Below, piece after piece: positions 15,219 through 62,640 of a stretch of 64,000 nt of DNA. Made by a program: the position numbers and the translations under genes. The notes beneath the pieces were generated by a model. That model saw only the letters and a program-made list of their open reading frames with translations, did no database searches and was not told the origin of the DNA. Each line of letters begins with the position of its first letter. Position 1 is the first letter of the stretch. The stretch is taken from positions 298,103 through 362,102 of the IMG/VR virus record IMGVR_UViG_3300045970_000794, one strand, 5' to 3'.

Positions 15219-15289
15219 GATTTTAAGTATTAATTTGATGCAAAGATAATACAAATATTTTTAATAACCAAATTTTTTGTGAATTATTT

Positions 15290-15516: not shown

Positions 15517-15780
15517 TTAAGCATCACTATATTTAATAAACATAGTATCCATGAATTTTTTAACATCATTTAATTCACCTTGATAACATCTTCCCATACC
15601 ACAAATCGTATAAATTGGAAATTCGTTATCTTTTACATTTTCAAATATATTCAAGTTATGCTCTATTACAATCTTATAATCCCTATATGTTTCAATTTCT
15701 TCAATTTTCCCTTTAACAAAACGCTCACTAACATCGTGTATAGCACATTGCTGTTCATTTTTCAAATTATCTTTTTCCAT
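15517..15780 (-). CDS. cassette 1 hypothetical protein
   Basis: Starts inside site 1 (QCAIHDVS encoded by the arm). Confidence 0.7.
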   Translation of the reverse strand: MEKDNLKNEQQCAIHDVSERFVKGKIEEIETYRDYKIVIEHNLNIFENVKDNEFPIYTICGMGRCYQGELNDVKKFMDTMFIKYSDA

Positions 15781-15843
15781 ATTATTAAATTTAGTATTTC
15801 AAATTAAGTTCTCGTTGGCAACGTGCTATACACGCAGCCGTTA
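15729..15843 (+). repeat. attC-like site 1
   Basis: TAAC-at-CGTGTATAGCACATTGC ... GCAACGTGCTATACACG-cagcc-GTTA. Confidence 0.85.
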
Positions 15844-16047: not shown

Positions 16048-16160
16048 TAACAACAAATATAAGTTATTATTTTCAGTGTTCCAAATTAAATTATCTGTTT
16101 ATTTATACGTTTGTTTTTTAATTAAGTTTCAGTTATAACAACTTATATTTGCAACCGTTA
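16048..16160 (+). repeat. attC-like site 2
   Basis: TAAC-aa-CAAATATAAGTTATTAT ... ATAACAACTTATATTTG-caacc-GTTA. Confidence 0.85.
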
Positions 16161-16196
16161 GCAGCTATTAAAACAGTACGCTCGTTCCTCGCCTGC

Positions 16197-16457
16197 TAAC
16201 ATCGAATAAGAAAAATAAAAATTACTACTGTTGTGGTTCATCGAGTGGTGGTGGTTTTAAATACCATTTTCCGTTATCATCAACAAAAAAACTTTCAGGC
16301 TTCATCTGTTCATATCCCCAAGAACAAAAACCTTTGCAGTTTTTATTTTCGCATACATTATTAAATTCTCCCCATTCCTGTCCACACAATACACATATAA
16401 GTTTTTTTTCGTGTTCCATATACCGTAATTTTTACATTTTCTTATTCGCAGCCGTTA
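16197..16457 (+). repeat. attC-like site 3 (loop contains a whole gene)
   Basis: TAAC-at-CGAATAAGAAAAATAAAAATTAC ... GTAATTTTTACATTTTCTTATTCG-cagcc-GTTA. Confidence 0.8.
16225..16419 (-). CDS. small zinc-finger-like protein nested in site 3
   Basis: CVLC...CENKNC. Confidence 0.65.
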   Translation of the reverse strand: MEHEKKLICVLCGQEWGEFNNVCENKNCKGFCSWGYEQMKPESFFVDDNGKWYLKPPPLDEPQQ

Positions 16458-16670
16458 GGCGTAATTAAAAGTAATCCTAACTTTAGCCTTAAATTCTCTA
16501 TATCCGTTTTCGTTTTCAATAGTCATTTCTTGTAATATGTCCTGAATGAATATCAGTGCATCATCTGTTATTTCAGTTCCTTTAGGGTAAGTCTTTGAAT
16601 AACTACGCCTAACACCACCTATATTTAATTGCTGGCTATCTGCGTTATTAAAGGTCTGTTCGTTGTTCAT
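16455..16670 (-). CDS. cassette 4 hypothetical protein
   Basis: Starts in site 4 loop (QLNIGGVR); its stop TAA is the TTA of the cassette's GTTA. Confidence 0.7.
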   Translation of the reverse strand: MNNEQTFNNADSQQLNIGGVRRSYSKTYPKGTEITDDALIFIQDILQEMTIENENGYREFKAKVRITFNYA

Positions 16671-16734
16671 AATTTCGTGTAATTTGATAGTTTAGTATTT
16701 CAAAATCAGCAACTAAACATAGCTGTAACCGTTA
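16610..16734 (+). repeat. attC-like site 4
   Basis: TAAC-ac-CACCTATATTTAATTGCTG ... CAGCAACTAAACATAGCTG-taacc-GTTA. Confidence 0.85.
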
Positions 16735-16966: not shown

Positions 16967-17052
16967 TAACAAGCAATATATGTAATTGCCTATTAAGGTT
17001 TGTAAAATTTTTAAATTTTGTGCAAGGCAACTACATATATTGCCAACCGTTA
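16967..17052 (+). repeat. attC-like site 5
   Basis: TAAC-aa-GCAATATATGTAATTGCC ... GGCAACTACATATATTGC-caacc-GTTA. Confidence 0.85.
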
Positions 17053-17389: not shown

Positions 17390-17437
17390 TAACAAATGAT
17401 AAACAACATTAAAACGATTGTTTATCATCGGACGTTA
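17390..17437 (+). repeat. attC-like site 6 (minimal, 48 bp)
   Basis: TAAC-aa-ATGATAAACAA-cattaaaacga-TTGTTTATCAT-cggac-GTTA. Confidence 0.8.
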
Positions 17438-17458
17438 TGGCTCATTAAAACGAAGCCA

Positions 17459-17950
17459 TAACAGCAAATATAACCAATGCTGTCAGTGCTTCGATTTAAG
17501 TTTTGCGATTAAAAGTTTTTAAAAATTGCCATCGCACTTAAAAAGTTTCAAGTATTTTTCCTGTTGGTTCAACAAAATCAATTACACTTGTTTCACCATT
17601 TTCTTTTTCTACACCTATTTGCCCAGTTAACCTAGAATTAATAGTTTCAAATTTATGCAATTCGCATCTAAAAGAAAATGTATCTTTTAACTTGGTTTGC
17701 AACTCAACATTCCAACCGTCATTGGATTGGTCAAACAAATGGTTCAATGCAAATTCTTTAACAATCAATTTAACCATTTTCATTCTTAATGATTTTTTAC
17801 TTTTTACTTTCATACTTTTAATTTTAAATTTATATAAATATAATGTTTTTATTTAAGATAATCAATATTTTCTCACGCTATTTTTAAAAACTTTTTTGCG
17901 GTGTTTCAATTAAGCATTAGTGTTAGCACTGGTTATATTTGCAGCCGTTA
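17459..17950 (+). repeat. attC-like site 7 (loop contains a whole gene and an inner 16-bp inverted repeat)
   Basis: TAAC-ag-CAAATATAACCAATGCT ... AGCACTGGTTATATTTG-cagcc-GTTA. Confidence 0.8.
17538..17813 (-). CDS. hypothetical protein nested in site 7
   Basis: 91-aa ORF. Confidence 0.65.
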   Translation of the reverse strand: MKVKSKKSLRMKMVKLIVKEFALNHLFDQSNDGWNVELQTKLKDTFSFRCELHKFETINSRLTGQIGVEKENGETSVIDFVEPTGKILETF

Positions 17951-18543: not shown

Positions 18544-18603
18544 TTTATCTGTTTATTAAATTTTGAAATACAAAATTGGCACTAAATATAGCTGTAAACA
18601 TTA
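18480..18603 (+). repeat. attC-like site 9 (core G replaced by A)
   Basis: TAAC-at-CAGCTATATTCAATGCC ... GGCACTAAATATAGCTG-taaac-ATTA. Confidence 0.8.
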
Positions 18604-19575
18604 TACCCCATTTAAGAGCGACCCGAAAATGTGAGCGATTATATCAACAGTCCATCCGTTTCCGAGCATTTTTTTTGATTGGCTTTCTGAAACAATATCA
18701 GTAAAGTAATTTTCGGGAACTGTTTGTAATCTGCAATACTCTTTCAAAGTGTAATATCTAAATGGTAGCTTGTTTTTAAAAGCGTCCTTATGCCTACCTA
18801 TTGGCATTGTAGTTAAAACATTGTCTTTTTCAACAGTAGTTAGGCAGTTGCTTTTATTAGTGTTAGTTGCTCTTACTTCCAAGCATTGCGTAATCGGTAC
18901 ATCTTTGTTGTAGTCATCTCTTACACCTCGCTCATTCAATCTTCTACCTAAAATAGTAGCTTTATTCAACCTTCGCCCTCTTATTGCACTTGGGTTAATA
19001 AAATCGTCAGTTTCAAGTATATCAATAAGGTTTATTGCTTTGTCGGTTGGCTGTGTAATTTCAAAGTTTGCCCAATACAAACGAACCCTATTTTGTGCAG
19101 TAACTAAGCTACTGTTAATCGCAACAGGTTCAACCCCTAAATACTCGCTAATTACTTGCTCATATTCTTTTTTCATTACTACATTTTCAAGTAACCAGTA
19201 TTTAGGTTTCAATTCTTTAACCAATCTAACAAACTCAAAAAATAGTTTGCTTCGAGGGTCATCAAAGTTTAACTGTTTGCCACTAAAACTAAATCCTTGG
19301 CATGGGCTACCTCCAATCAATAAATCAACTTTAGGTAAGTCTTTTGCAAATACTTTAGTTACATCGCCTAATTGTATTGTTTTCGGGTAGTTGGTTTGTG
19401 TTACTTTAATAGCGTGTTTATCAATCTCACTCGCAAAGTAGTTATCATATTCAATCCCAACTCTATTAAGTGCTATTTGTCCACAACTCATTCCATCAAA
19501 AAGAGAAAGAACAGAAGAAAAACGGGGCATAACACCGTGTATAGGTAATGTGGGGTTTTGTGGTAATTCAATCAT
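18601..19575 (-). CDS. dcm: DNA (cytosine-5)-methyltransferase (cassette 10)
   Basis: LSLFDGM, EID, GGSPCQGFS, LENV, QNRVR, LGNGW motifs. Confidence 0.92.
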   Translation of the reverse strand: MIELPQNPTLPIHGVMPRFSSVLSLFDGMSCGQIALNRVGIEYDNYFASEIDKHAIKVTQTNYPKTIQLGDVTKVFAKDLPKVDLLIGGSPCQGFSFSGKQLNFDDPRSKLFFEFVRLVKELKPKYWLLENVVMKKEYEQVISEYLGVEPVAINSSLVTAQNRVRLYWANFEITQPTDKAINLIDILETDDFINPSAIRGRRLNKATILGRRLNERGVRDDYNKDVPITQCLEVRATNTNKSNCLTTVEKDNVLTTMPIGRHKDAFKNKLPFRYYTLKEYCRLQTVPENYFTDIVSESQSKKMLGNGWTVDIIAHIFGSLLNGV

Positions 19576-19653
19576 TTGTTCTCGTATTTAAGTTATTACT
19601 ATTTTGACAGGGTAGTGCTTCGTATTCCCACACTACCCATACACGAAACGTTA
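19530..19653 (+). repeat. attC-like site 10
   Basis: TAAC-ac-CGTGTATAGGTAATGTGGG ... CCCACACTACCCATACACG-aaac-GTTA. Confidence 0.85.
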
Positions 19654-45308: not shown

Positions 45309-47234
45309 TTAATTATATTTAGATAATTCGAACGCCCTTCTATCCAAAGAAACGCTCTTAACTTTAACCATTATCTCATCACCGAGTTTTAATTTATACC
45401 CACTACTACCAACAACGCAATAGTTTGATACATCTGATGTGAATTGTTCATCGGGAATGATATCACCCAATCTCATCAATCCCTCACATTTAGAATCAGC
45501 TAATTCAACAAATACACCGCTTTCAATTATACCAGTTACCACACCCATGAATATCTTACCAACTTTATCAGCCATATATTCAGTTTGTTTGTATTTAATT
45601 GATTCACGTTCGGCTTTCTGAGCTTTACGTTCTCTTTCAGATAAGTGAGAACATTTACCTTCTAATCGATTACCATTAACATTAAACTTGCTATCTAAGT
45701 ACCTAGTTAATAATCTATGTACCATTATGTCTGGATAACGTCTAATTGGTGATGTGAAATGACAATAATCTTGAAACCCTAAACCATAGTGACCAACATT
45801 ATGTGTTGTGTAGGTTGCTTTAGACATTGTACGAACGATTAATCGGTTAACCATATTTTCCAATGGTTTACCCTCAAGCTCTTTAATTATTTTTTTAAAA
45901 CTAGCTTTAGTATCAGCTGGGTTTTTAGTATTAACTTTTAAATCGAATTGAGCTAAGAATGTTTTTAATTCTTCAATCTTTTCATCATCTGGTAACTCAT
46001 GAGCTCTGTTCACCATCGGTAAACCATTCAATCTAGCGTATTCAGCTACTTTTCTATTAGCTAATAACATATATTCCTCAATCAAATTATTAGAATCCAA
46101 TGATTCCTTCACAATAATTTTAACTGGTTTCTTGTTTTCATCTAATTCGAATTTAAAGCTAGGGCTTTTCATTTCAATAGCACCTTTACTTATTCTAATA
46201 GCTCTCATTTTCTTAGCTAAATCATTTAGTATTACTAAATAATCACCTAAGAATGCACCTGATGGGTCACTAATAAATCTATTATCATCGCCACGGTCAA
46301 TACATTCTTGTGCGCTTTCATATGTAAACCTATGTCTAGAACATATTACAGTTCTACCCATCCAAGTGTTCATAATTTTAGCATCCTTATTCATTGTCAC
46401 AACCACTGAGAAACATAACCTATCTTCAAATGGTTTCAAAGAACAAATGTCATTCGACAAATATTCTGGAATCATTGGTATCACTCTATCAACTAGATAG
46501 ATTGATGTACCACGTGAATATGCCTCAGCATCGATAGATGTTTCTGGTCTTACGTAGTGAGACACATCAGCAATATGAATACCAATTTCATAACAACCCA
46601 TATCAACTTCTCTGAATGATAATGCATCATCAAAGTCTTTAGCATCAACAGGGTCAATCGTGAATGTAGGTACTTTACGGAAATCTCTTCTCTTTTTAAT
46701 TTCACGTTCAGTTATCTCTCTACTGATACCTTCAGCTTCGTCCAATACATCTTGTGGGAATTCGGTTGGTAAACCATATTCTTGGATAATTGCATGCATT
46801 TCAACATCATTATCACCAGCATCACCTAACACTTCAACAATCTTACCTAATGGACATTTATCTTGTGGTCTCCACTCGATTAATTCAGCAATAACTTTCT
46901 GACCATTTGTGGCTCCATTTAAGCGTGTTAGAGGCACGTAAAAGTCAACTGATAGTTTTCTATTATCTGGACGAAAAAATGCGAAATTATCGCTTATATC
47001 AATCCTACCGACAAATTTATCTTTGTATCTCTTAACAACTTTTATAACTTTAGCTTCTAGAGGTCTATCTTGAGACTCTATAACTTTTATTTCAACCGTA
47101 TCTAAATGTAACGCTTGATTAATATTTTCTTTTTGAACATAAAGGTCCTTAGCCATTTCATCCGATTGGAAATATGCTGACCCACTTAAATTCAATGTAA
47201 TTTTACCTTTATAGGTATCCCCTACTTTTATCAT
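45309..47234 (-). CDS. rnr: ribonuclease R
   Basis: FTIDPVDAKDFDDALS, HIADVSHYV, IEEYMLLAN, HFTSPIRRYPD, C-terminal S1. Confidence 0.95.
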   Translation of the reverse strand: MIKVGDTYKGKITLNLSGSAYFQSDEMAKDLYVQKENINQALHLDTVEIKVIESQDRPLEAKVIKVVKRYKDKFVGRIDISDNFAFFRPDNRKLSVDFYVPLTRLNGATNGQKVIAELIEWRPQDKCPLGKIVEVLGDAGDNDVEMHAIIQEYGLPTEFPQDVLDEAEGISREITEREIKKRRDFRKVPTFTIDPVDAKDFDDALSFREVDMGCYEIGIHIADVSHYVRPETSIDAEAYSRGTSIYLVDRVIPMIPEYLSNDICSLKPFEDRLCFSVVVTMNKDAKIMNTWMGRTVICSRHRFTYESAQECIDRGDDNRFISDPSGAFLGDYLVILNDLAKKMRAIRISKGAIEMKSPSFKFELDENKKPVKIIVKESLDSNNLIEEYMLLANRKVAEYARLNGLPMVNRAHELPDDEKIEELKTFLAQFDLKVNTKNPADTKASFKKIIKELEGKPLENMVNRLIVRTMSKATYTTHNVGHYGLGFQDYCHFTSPIRRYPDIMVHRLLTRYLDSKFNVNGNRLEGKCSHLSERERKAQKAERESIKYKQTEYMADKVGKIFMGVVTGIIESGVFVELADSKCEGLMRLGDIIPDEQFTSDVSNYCVVGSSGYKLKLGDEIMVKVKSVSLDRRAFELSKYN

Positions 47235-60175: not shown

Positions 60176-61462
60176 ATGGCACAATTTATTAAAATTGAAT
60201 GGGATGCAAGTCCATCACCAATTTCGGGATATAATGTATATCGTGGTGGTGCTGACGGCAATGAATCAAATGTACCACTTAATACTTCACCAATTACGGA
60301 TACATTTTATGACGACTATACAATATTTCCTGGTAAGGTATATTGCTATACCGTTACAGCTGTTTTAAACGGTGTGGAAAGTACCAACTCACTAAAAATT
60401 TATACTGAGCCAATTGGATTTATTAATTCACCAGCACAATTAGATTTAGGTGCTTTCGCTGGATTTGGTTTGCTAGCAGCGACTACAATTACTAACGTTC
60501 CTGGAACTGGAACCACATCAGACGTAACTGGTGATGTTGGTGTATTTCCAGGTTCATCAATCACTGGTTTTGAATCAGTTAGAATTTCTGGTTCATACCA
60601 TTTAGCTGATTATGTAGCTGGTTATGCACAAAGTTCATTAACAAATACGTTTCTTACTGGTATGGCATTAACTGGTGCAACCTCAGTTCCAGCCGATTTG
60701 GGTGGCCTTGTTTTAATACCAGGAATTTATTCAGCCGCTACTTCAGCTGCCATTACTGGCGTTTTAGTATTGAATGCTGAAGGTAATCCAGATGCTGTTT
60801 GGGTTTTCCAAATAGGTTCAACATTAACTACTGCTGCTGGCAATAGCACTGTTGTCCTAGTTGGTGGTGCTCAAGCAACAAACGTTACTTGGTTAGTCGG
60901 TTCTTCAGCAACTATGGGTGTTGATACAATTTTCGCTGGTAATGTTATTGCATATGCATCAATCACAGTAAATACTAACGCATCTGTTTGCGGAAGATTA
61001 GGTGCTAGAACAGCTGCAATTACATTAGATAAAAATGCTATTATTATTTACGGTTCTTGTTATGAGCCTTTGCCAGCATCGCCAGCAAATACACCACCAG
61101 AACCACCAAGTGCACCAACAGGTGTTCACGTTGATGATTTAAATGCTGATGGTTTAGTTAATAATATTCCAATATTACCAATTGTTACAACGTCAGTTAT
61201 TAGTATGTTGTCAGAAACTTCCGCAAATGGTGGTGGTAACATAACACATGATGGTTATGATGTTATTATCGCACGTGGAGTTTGTTGGAGTACTAACATC
61301 AATCCATTATTAACTGGAAGCCATACAATTGATGGTTCGGGTGTTGGTGTATTCACATCTTTAATTGCAAATTTATTACCATTCACAACGTATTATGTTA
61401 GAGCTTACGCTGTAAACTCTGCTGGTACTGCTTATGGTGATAACGTAATGTTCATCAATTAA
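60176..61462 (+). CDS. ice-binding-like (DUF3494) protein flanked by FN3-like domains
   Basis: TGDVGV.PG.SITGF, DLGGL.L.PGIY, GNPDAVWVFQIGSTLTTA, GAQATNV.W.VGSSAT; FN3 GYNVYR and TTYYVRAYA. Confidence 0.88.
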   Translation: MAQFIKIEWDASPSPISGYNVYRGGADGNESNVPLNTSPITDTFYDDYTIFPGKVYCYTVTAVLNGVESTNSLKIYTEPIGFINSPAQLDLGAFAGFGLLAATTITNVPGTGTTSDVTGDVGVFPGSSITGFESVRISGSYHLADYVAGYAQSSLTNTFLTGMALTGATSVPADLGGLVLIPGIYSAATSAAITGVLVLNAEGNPDAVWVFQIGSTLTTAAGNSTVVLVGGAQATNVTWLVGSSATMGVDTIFAGNVIAYASITVNTNASVCGRLGARTAAITLDKNAIIIYGSCYEPLPASPANTPPEPPSAPTGVHVDDLNADGLVNNIPILPIVTTSVISMLSETSANGGGNITHDGYDVIIARGVCWSTNINPLLTGSHTIDGSGVGVFTSLIANLLPFTTYYVRAYAVNSAGTAYGDNVMFIN

Positions 61463-61475
61463 AATAATAATGAAT

Positions 61476-61500
61476 TCCCACAAAGGTTATCTTTGTGGGA
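61476..61500 (+). terminator. stem-loop between the two DUF3494 genes
   Basis: TCCCACAAAG-gttat-CTTTGTGGGA; no strong U tract. Confidence 0.5.
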
Positions 61501-61533
61501 GCTTATTAAATAAACATAAATAAACTTAAAATT

Positions 61534-62640
61534 ATGGCCTCAATATTTCAAAGATTAAAAATACCAACTTCAATTTCAACCGTATCAACAGGATTATTTA
61601 ATTCATTAATGGATTATTTTGATAAAGGTATAAGTGGTATATTTTTCACAACACCAATTCGTTATTCTACTAGCTATGGTATAACAGCAAATCCTAATGG
61701 TGGTCAAGCACATGCAACTAGATTGTTAAGTGAAATAAATAATGTAGATATAGTTTCAACAAACGGTGATAGTGTAAAATTAATGACTGCATTACCAGGT
61801 TATTCTATAACTGTAAAAAATAATGGATTAAAAAATTTATTAGTTTACCCATACGAATTGGATAAAATTGATGAAGAACTAGCTGACGTTCCAATAACAA
61901 TGCTACCAGAAGAAACAAGAGTCTTTAAATCAATTAGTGATTCTCGTTGGGAAAGTATGCCAAATAGTCTTCAAACTATTACCTACGTGTTGAGTGGTAA
62001 TTCATTGCCAACAACACCATCAGTTTATGACTTAAAATTAGCGTCTACTTTTGCCATTCTTACTGATGGTGCGATTACAATTAGTAATCCACAATTAATA
62101 ATACCTTATGGACGTTCTGGTGAAGCAAGTTTAACACCAACAACTGGTATAACATTTATCAATGGCTCTGATGCTGGATTAAGCGCTAGTGCTGTGACTG
62201 ATTCAAATACTTTATTTAATGAATTAGTTGTTTTGACTGGTTATACTTTCGGTGCAGTTAATTTAGAAACCGTGAATGTTGGATATGGTGCTGGTACATT
62301 TATGTCTGGCGTTTATATTGGCTCAACTAGTATAGTAACATCAGCCTCTCAAACTATAAAATTAGTTGGTGATGGTGATTATATTTTCATAAGTCAAGGT
62401 GCTATGACATTCGGTGCATCAACAACAATTGAACTAACACATGGTGCGCAAGCTAGTAGAGTATATTGGGTATCTGTAGGTGCTATTACTACTGGTGCAG
62501 TTAATATTCTTAAAGGAAACTTTATCACATCAGCTGCAATTAATATCGGAGCAACAAATGATATTGAAGGTAGACTATTATCAACATTAACCTCTGAAAT
62601 AACAATAGATGGTATAGCAACTAATATTTACTTACCATAA
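61534..62640 (+). CDS. protein with C-terminal DUF3494 ice-binding-like domain
   Basis: FAIL..GAI, F..GVY, YIF...GA.T, L..GAQASRVYW...GA.T, GRLLS. Confidence 0.75.
   Translation: MASIFQRLKIPTSISTVSTGLFNSLMDYFDKGISGIFFTTPIRYSTSYGITANPNGGQAHATRLLSEINNVDIVSTNGDSVKLMTALPGYSITVKNNGLKNLLVYPYELDKIDEELADVPITMLPEETRVFKSISDSRWESMPNSLQTITYVLSGNSLPTTPSVYDLKLASTFAILTDGAITISNPQLIIPYGRSGEASLTPTTGITFINGSDAGLSASAVTDSNTLFNELVVLTGYTFGAVNLETVNVGYGAGTFMSGVYIGSTSIVTSASQTIKLVGDGDYIFISQGAMTFGASTTIELTHGAQASRVYWVSVGAITTGAVNILKGNFITSAAINIGATNDIEGRLLSTLTSEITIDGIATNIYLP

Follow-up and report, generated by a model that had tools for sequence, protein, structure and literature searches.

Can a gene cassette carry its gene inside the loop of its own recombination hairpin instead of in the cassette body? 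This question is raised by positions 16197-16457 of a 64,000-nt stretch of phage DNA (the window), which is the last 64 kb (298103-362102) of the 362,102-bp virus record IMGVR_UViG_3300045970_000794. The record has direct terminal repeats, is rated complete, has about 30% G+C, and almost all of its ORFs are located on the minus strand. A sequence-only reading had proposed that a 64-aa zinc-finger-like ORF (ORF64) fills the loop of an attC-like site, that its stop abuts one arm and its ATG lies 5 nt from the other, that the associated cassette body is a 44-bp non-coding stub, and that cargo can therefore travel in the variable loop as an inside-out cassette. The observation was confirmed to the base. 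The interpretation was partly supported: the anatomy and the existence of an alternative cassette layout hold, but the arms do not travel with this gene, and the terms attC and integron apply by analogy only.

On the plus strand the region begins with the R' box of the preceding site 2 (GTTAGCAG, 16157-16164), whose G|TTA is the inferred left boundary of the cassette. It is followed by a 28-nt loop (16165-16192), which is the loop of the non-coding stub and begins CTATTAAAAC, and by the R'' box of site 3 (CTGCTAAC, 16193-16200), which pairs 8/8 with 16157-16164. After a spacer AT comes the left arm (L'', 16203-16225) with the perfect core CGAATAAGAAAA (16203-16214) plus a 10-nt extension, which overlaps the stop codon by 1 nt. 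ORF64 is located on the minus strand at 16225-16419, with its stop TAG at 16225-16227, followed by TAA, and its ATG at 16417-16419. Five nucleotides (ATACC, 16420-16424) separate it from the right arm (L', 16425-16448, core 16437-16448), which is followed by the spacer CAGCC (16449-16453) and the R' box GTTAGGCG (16454-16461), the inferred right boundary, where TTA is the antisense of the stop codon of the next ORF (16455-16670). The site runs from TAAC at 16197 to GTTA at 16457 (261 bp), and its arms of 23-24 nt pair as 12 perfect bp plus 10 more after a small internal loop. ViennaRNA folds of the minus strand, as DNA and as RNA, keep the long-range closing stem and the stub hairpin in both the MFE and the centroid structure. 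A chance inverted repeat was considered, because the DNA is AT-rich and a repeat search listed many weak inverted repeats. It is excluded by 5,000 shuffles of the upstream 870 nt, in which no in-register stem scored above 8, against 12 observed before counting the 10-bp extension, and also by the paired stub and the membership of an array.

ORF64 is a real gene. It has 16 metagenomic homologs at 63-77% identity, with invariant C12, C23 and C28 and near-invariant C9 and C32 (CxxC...C-x4-C-x3-C), and matches no Pfam or PHROG family. Used as a single query against the viral collection it returned nothing, as did the neighboring cassette ORF 16455-16670. None of the cassette proteins of the window recurred in the array loci retrieved first.

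The site is one of nine in an array at about 15.7-19.7 kb of the window, with no recombinase next to it. The motif CCGTTA[GT] is clustered at 15.8-18.3 kb. A genome-wide scan for TAAC - 1-3 nt - stem ... stem - 4-6 nt - GTTA gave ten convincing sites, eight in the window and two at genome positions 15.8-16.8 kb, all on the plus strand, against 0-3 weak hits per strand in shuffled genomes. Site 1 (15729-15843, 115 nt) holds the start of ORF 15517-15780 in its loop. Site 2 (16048-16160, 113 nt) is an ordinary site and reads TTTG-N20-TATATTTG on the minus strand, which matches a Bacteroidota promoter. Site 4 (16610-16734, 125 nt) holds the start of ORF 16455-16670 in its loop. Site 5 (16967-17052) has 86 nt, and site 6 (17390-17437) belongs to the 48-nt class with the loop CATTAAAACG. 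A canonical stub hairpin, GTTA-TGGCT-CATTAAAACGA-AGCCA-TAAC, is located at 17437-17462. It precedes site 7 (17459-17950, 492 nt), a second inside-out cassette with the 91-aa ORF 17538-17813 (minus strand) in its loop. Site 9 (19530-19653) has 124 nt, and its left arm overlaps the 5' end of the open frame of a C5 cytosine DNA methylase (18601-19575, minus strand). This frame runs 15 codons into the arm and loop of the site, but an in-frame ATG (M16) inside the R box GTTATG is probably the true start. Together with the ORFs that begin inside the loops of sites 1 and 4, these cases look like intermediates between ordinary and inside-out cassettes.

Next to the second small array, outside the window, lies a 116-aa ORF (genome 15083-15433, minus strand; positions 816-1166 of locus L003 of this genome) that consists only of the N-terminal SAM-like domain of a tyrosine recombinase. 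No catalytic tyrosine recombinase domain was found anywhere in the 362-kb genome. Homologs of this ORF in 63 viral loci are mostly complete proteins of about 267-276 aa (28 of the 32 examined have open frames of 266-295 aa) with the R-K-H-R-H-Y set. The copy in this genome ends ...NKIQLPI and the full-length protein ends ...KLPI, so it carries an in-frame internal deletion. The full-length enzyme is Xer-like. Its best NCBIfam hit is XerA at 177 bits, below the cut-off of 220, and it scores 147.5 bits against the integron-integrase model TIGR02249, below the cut-off of 265. It has 14 residues where VchIntIA has 64, so the IntI-specific insert of about 50 aa is missing. Its closest solved relatives are XerC-like, XerA, IntI4 and XerD. 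In 25 of 32 loci an array of sites lies upstream of the recombinase gene, always on the opposite strand, and the cassette ORFs point toward the recombinase gene. Apart from the orientation of the ORFs, which are antisense to the sites in the window and in 11 of 11 arrays checked, this is the integron layout. The two-site mini-array beside the deleted gene starts at an attI-like GTTATGTG (L003:1211), 45 nt from the start of the deleted gene, which pairs with the R'' of the first cassette and is the only attI candidate. The first cassette encodes a 69-aa protein (L003:1234-1443, minus strand) with a Hint/intein-like look (...ERGWLKAKEL...) and no match in Pfam or PHROGs.

About 400 similar sites occur in 70 loci of related uncultured phages and fall into length classes of 48, 79-92 and 113-139 nt and into shared sequence sub-families. 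An RNAalifold consensus of the minus strand of 41 sites predicts 24 pairs, of which 18 show compensatory changes, and two G.T pairs (TAACG/TGTTA, and stem position 13) are invariant. Among 324 unique sites the non-Watson-Crick stem positions are A.C on the plus strand (G.T on the minus strand) 444 times and G.T on the plus strand 42 times. The minus strand is therefore the one that folds; it is the bottom strand in integron terms, but also the mRNA strand, and the covariation and wobble signals would fit an RNA structure equally well. The bases after each GTTA pair with the bases before the next TAAC and not with those of their own site. Homology between phages starts and stops inside CCGTTA. 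The first cassette of the mini-array is 94% identical to a copy in two other viral contigs (L024 and L033), with homology beginning exactly at GTTATG and ending at GTTAT; the left flank is the recombinase-proximal sequence here and the site of a different cassette there. The mobile unit is therefore TTAxxx - body - xxxTAAC - NN - L'' - loop - L' - CARCC - G, which is the frame the sequence-only reading assumed. Recombination of these sites is inferred from such comparisons: assembled contigs of four pond or freshwater runs showed no excision joint or cassette circle, which, for assembled contigs, is not evidence of absence.

Gene-in-loop sites are rare overall (about 2.5%). In a first survey about 10 of 400 sites exceeded 200 nt with arms that had no nearer partner, and 8 of the 10 inspected held an ATG ORF of 50 aa or more on the usual gene strand. 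The arm family of site 7 encloses genes of 181 and 220 aa in two other phages and never occurs as a short site. These cassettes have a stereotyped tiny body, GTTA-N5-CATTAAAACGA-N5'-TAAC, and the same mini-loop caps the 48-nt site 6. A scan of the IMG/VR viral collection for this stub returned at least 119 stretches and 106 distinct stubs, 88 of them with all five N5 pairs compensated. The site that starts at the TAAC of the stub is long (212-1282 nt) in 49 cases, short in 14 and not found in 34, with 9 more at contig ends. Of the 63 sites that could be defined after a stub, 49 are thus long, and 48 of these 49 hold an ATG ORF of 35 aa or more in the usual cassette orientation, antisense to the site, covering a median 73% of the site. 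Only 12 have such an ORF on the other strand, and none contains a nested short site. The arms of the long sites show 786 Watson-Crick pairs, 58 A.C and 0 G.T on the plus strand, the same strand-specific wobble signature as in ordinary sites. By N-terminal motifs recognized by eye alone, the cargo includes several probable DNA methyltransferases and a ligase-like protein. One inside-out cassette (57-aa ORF) occurs at 93.5% identity in two unrelated contexts, the viral loci L352 and L373, with homology running from the stub loop to about 11 nt past the GTTA of the site, while the N5/N5' stem of the stub differs between the copies. More often, as in the locus groups L291/L324/L345 and L343/L391/L367/L327, the stub and arms are conserved while the cargo is unrelated. 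So it is the frame that persists, not the arms that follow a gene.

For ORF64 itself the homologs were examined for paired arms, the point on which the sequence-only reading had staked part of its own refutation, and the outcome went against it. About 13 distinct homolog contexts in 23 loci lack paired arms. These include positions after DnaB, RNase H, PolB or tail genes, after a tRNA, and fusion as the C-terminal part of larger proteins; in several phages (viral contigs L273-L283) the Cys-rich module forms the C-terminal part of proteins of 186-193 aa, so it also exists as a domain. Two contexts, L004 and L010/L011, keep only the homologous upstream leader of about 45 nt, starting exactly at CTAAC, and in L010 the stop codon runs straight into an ordinary 90-nt site. 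The upstream arm is thus the conserved 5' leader of the gene, and only this phage has a complementary copy downstream. No close relative of the arms of site 3 was found in 3.2 Mb of related loci, and nothing shows that this copy has moved. The stub of site 3 also departs from the canonical form, with 36 nt between GTTA and TAAC instead of 21, a 4-bp extension instead of 5, and a loop start that is a variant of CATTAAAACGA. On the other hand, site 3 keeps every conserved feature of the family: TAACG/TGTTA, a 4+1-nt bulge on the minus strand, spacers of 2 and 5 nt, a 12-bp core as in the 48-nt class, and a paired R extension.

The favored explanation, held with moderate confidence, is that 16157-16457 is a genuine inside-out cassette of a phage-borne, Xer-type, integron-like array. 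The anatomy, the covariation, the strand bias, the junctions at GTTA, the link to a recombinase gene and the recurrence of the class are established by the analysis, whereas the action of the recombinase on the folded minus strand, as IntI acts on the folded bottom strand of attC, and the use of long-loop sites as substrates, including recombination of the 261-bp site, are inferences. On the minus strand R''/R' and L''/L' pair into a bulged stem with invariant G.T wobbles, and in this view an excised single-stranded cassette would be a dumbbell with two loops. In ordinary cassettes the gene fills the loop beyond the R stem (the body) and the L-side loop has 10-80 nt; in this cassette and about 50 others the R-side loop is a tiny capped hairpin and the gene fills the L-side loop. 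A 222-nt loop should fold less readily than one of 10-80 nt, and since the recombinase gene of this phage carries an in-frame internal deletion, any movement would need a recombinase supplied by a co-infecting relative.

Two rivals, neither of which excludes the favored reading, were weighed against it. The hairpins might act as RNA, as insulators, terminators, processing sites or stabilizers with embedded promoters, in which case the untranslated ends of the ORF64 mRNA would pair into a 22-bp stem, for example as a target for double-strand RNase cutting or a protection against exonucleases, and cassette shuffling would come mostly from homologous recombination between repeated modules. The gene-sense orientation of the folded strand, the dominance of G.U-type wobbles by about 10:1, the position of the sites between small co-oriented ORFs, the Bacteroidota -33/-7 promoter that points into its own gene in one sub-family (site 2, minus strand), the persistence of the closing stem in the RNA fold, and the conservation of frames made of arms plus inner flanks around different cargo, as in PeSL-mediated modular shuffling (PMC2839356, PMC4122927), all fit this view. 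It does not explain why arrays abut a tyrosine recombinase gene in a fixed orientation, why homology breaks exactly inside CCGTTA, or why each R' extension matches the next R''. Moreover, only 42 of 324 sites have a TAnnTTTG box, there is no U-tract after the stems, and a consensus sigma-70 promoter and terminator scan, itself uninformative, found no terminator-like sites at them. This role, for which the support is from sequence alone, is considered unlikely as the main explanation.

Still less likely, site 3 could be a dead scar, in which an ordinary site of the 48-nt class was split when an ORF64 module with its own 10-bp terminal inverted repeat TAAAAATTAC/GTAATTTTTA was inserted into the loop by illegitimate or homologous recombination, the arms remaining complementary only because the event is recent and the site no longer recombining. 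The homologs without paired arms, the leader that travels with the gene without a partner in L004 and L010/L011, the 12-bp core and the deletion of the recombinase, which leaves nothing to select for site function now, are in its favor. The recurrence of the layout in at least 49 independent long sites with covarying arms, a strand-specific wobble pattern and a stereotyped covarying stub argues for maintained function of the class, and site 3 keeps every conserved feature. Chance is practically ruled out. The idea that site 3 joins two half-sites of one sub-family, as in locus L018 where a left arm also pairs with the right arm of a later copy, was rejected, because neither arm has a nearer partner and no short site is nested. 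A similarity between the first codons of ORF64 (16391-16421) and the arm and loop of site 2 (16053-16086) was judged possibly coincidental.

A bacterial origin of the sites was also rejected. A scan of one genome per species with the 17-mer TATATTTGCA[AG]CCGTTA from one arm family gave at least 120 hits, almost all in Bacteroidota, which are ordinary promoters without arrays. One arm sub-family of the phage sites therefore copies the -7 box and start region of the host, which points to a Bacteroidota host. The exceptions are three small MAG contigs (L122 and L144, binned as Methanolobus sp., and L206) that carry 5-13 of the phage-type sites and are probably mis-binned phage DNA. Among cultured phages the nearest integrases (Polaribacter phage Freya and Cellulophaga phage Ingeline, about 38% identity) have no such sites, and an 89-nt site found nothing in 50,697 phage records. 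An Rfam search gave no family, the only hit being a spurious miRNA-precursor match to site 9. Elsewhere in the genome a 25-49-nt motif (TTAATTTGATGCAAAGATAATACAAATATTTTT...; window 15230-15280) recurs at nine or more places, with a tripled contig depth there; on the plus strand it resembles TTTG-N18-TATTTTTA and may be a phage promoter. The phage also encodes two ice-binding-like proteins, one of them with a weak, sub-threshold fibronectin type III match, and a full RNase R/RNB-family exoribonuclease (60176-62640, plus strand, and 45309-47234, minus strand), which is unusual phage cargo and suggests a cold-water host.

A wider reading is tentative, and somewhat less likely than not: large uncultured phages, probably of Bacteroidota, might carry their own analogue of the integron, with a minimal Xer-like recombinase without the IntI domain and dumbbell cassettes that accept cargo in either loop, the inside-out form being a conserved frame (capped stub plus arms) whose cargo, often a DNA methyltransferase, is exchanged between phages. 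If so, hairpin-based cassette capture either evolved independently of IntI or survives in phages in a form that predates IntI. Integrons are the textbook system for capturing genes as cassettes, and their hairpin sites are thought to need the IntI-specific domain and a short variable loop. If the phage sites recombine, loop size is not a hard limit for hairpin-site recombination, there would be a second, simpler model for how such systems arise, and it would show how large phages trade small accessory genes, including methyltransferases that counter host restriction. It would also explain why standard integron finders, which cap site length, would miss such cassettes. No paper describing these arrays, this recombinase or genes inside the hairpin loop was found in a literature search of incomplete coverage, which is not proof of novelty.

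The closest known systems are integron gene cassettes with attC sites and CALINs, attC clusters without an integrase, which have been reported in phages, including a Polaribacter phage (Qi et al. 2023, PMC9892861). Shared are arrays of small cassettes, each ending in an imperfect palindrome with outer R''/R' boxes (..TAAC / GTTA..), inner L''/L' boxes and an unpaired spacer, structure conserved while sequence varies, junctions in G|TT with cassettes shared between arrays in different contexts, first cassette bases complementary to the cassette's own R'', a recombinase gene divergent from the top-strand orientation of the array, and a folded bottom strand. The cores read ..TAAC / GTTA[G/T/C].., so that many R' boxes (for example GTTATAA) break the GTTRRRY consensus. 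The window holds nine sites and no recombinase beside them, as in a CALIN if the sites are counted as attC. The phage system differs in the recombinase without the IntI-specific domain that an integron in the strict sense requires, in cassette genes that are antisense to the top strand of the site, not co-oriented and mostly promoterless as in integrons (where they are expressed from Pc), with some sites carrying their own promoter, in spacers of 2 and 5 nt, in discrete sequence and length sub-families shared between phages, and in two invariant G.T wobbles. Gene-bearing loops of 0.2-1.2 kb are not known for attC sites, which typically have about 57-141 bp. Apart from the few MAG contigs, the system was found only in uncultured viral contigs and not in bacterial chromosomes. 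The target-site duplication and scattered copies of a transposon or MITE with terminal inverted repeats are absent: no duplication flanks the arms, and arms of this sequence occur once in the genome and were not found elsewhere in the loci searched.

The PeSL (promoter-early stem-loop) mobile regulatory cassettes of T4-type phages (Arbiol et al. 2010, PMC2839356; Comeau et al. 2014, PMC4122927) likewise consist of repeated stem-loop and promoter modules that flank small ORFs of unknown function in plastic regions of large phages, with conserved modules carrying swappable genes. PeSLs have no dedicated recombinase, no R/L box architecture, no junction fixed at a 4-nt core and no gene inside the stem-loop. 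In the phage sites the hairpins are present, but only about 13% carry a host-type -7 box, and the association with a recombinase argues against pure PeSL behavior. Xer recombination on folded single-stranded DNA, as in integrating elements of the CTX-phi type, is similar in that a Xer-family recombinase would act on a hairpin formed by one DNA strand, and IntI itself is reported to derive from Xer-like enzymes (Escudero et al. 2016, PMC4792948). CTX-phi integrates a whole genome at dif using host XerCD, whereas here a phage-encoded enzyme, of putative activity, sits beside arrays of many cassettes.
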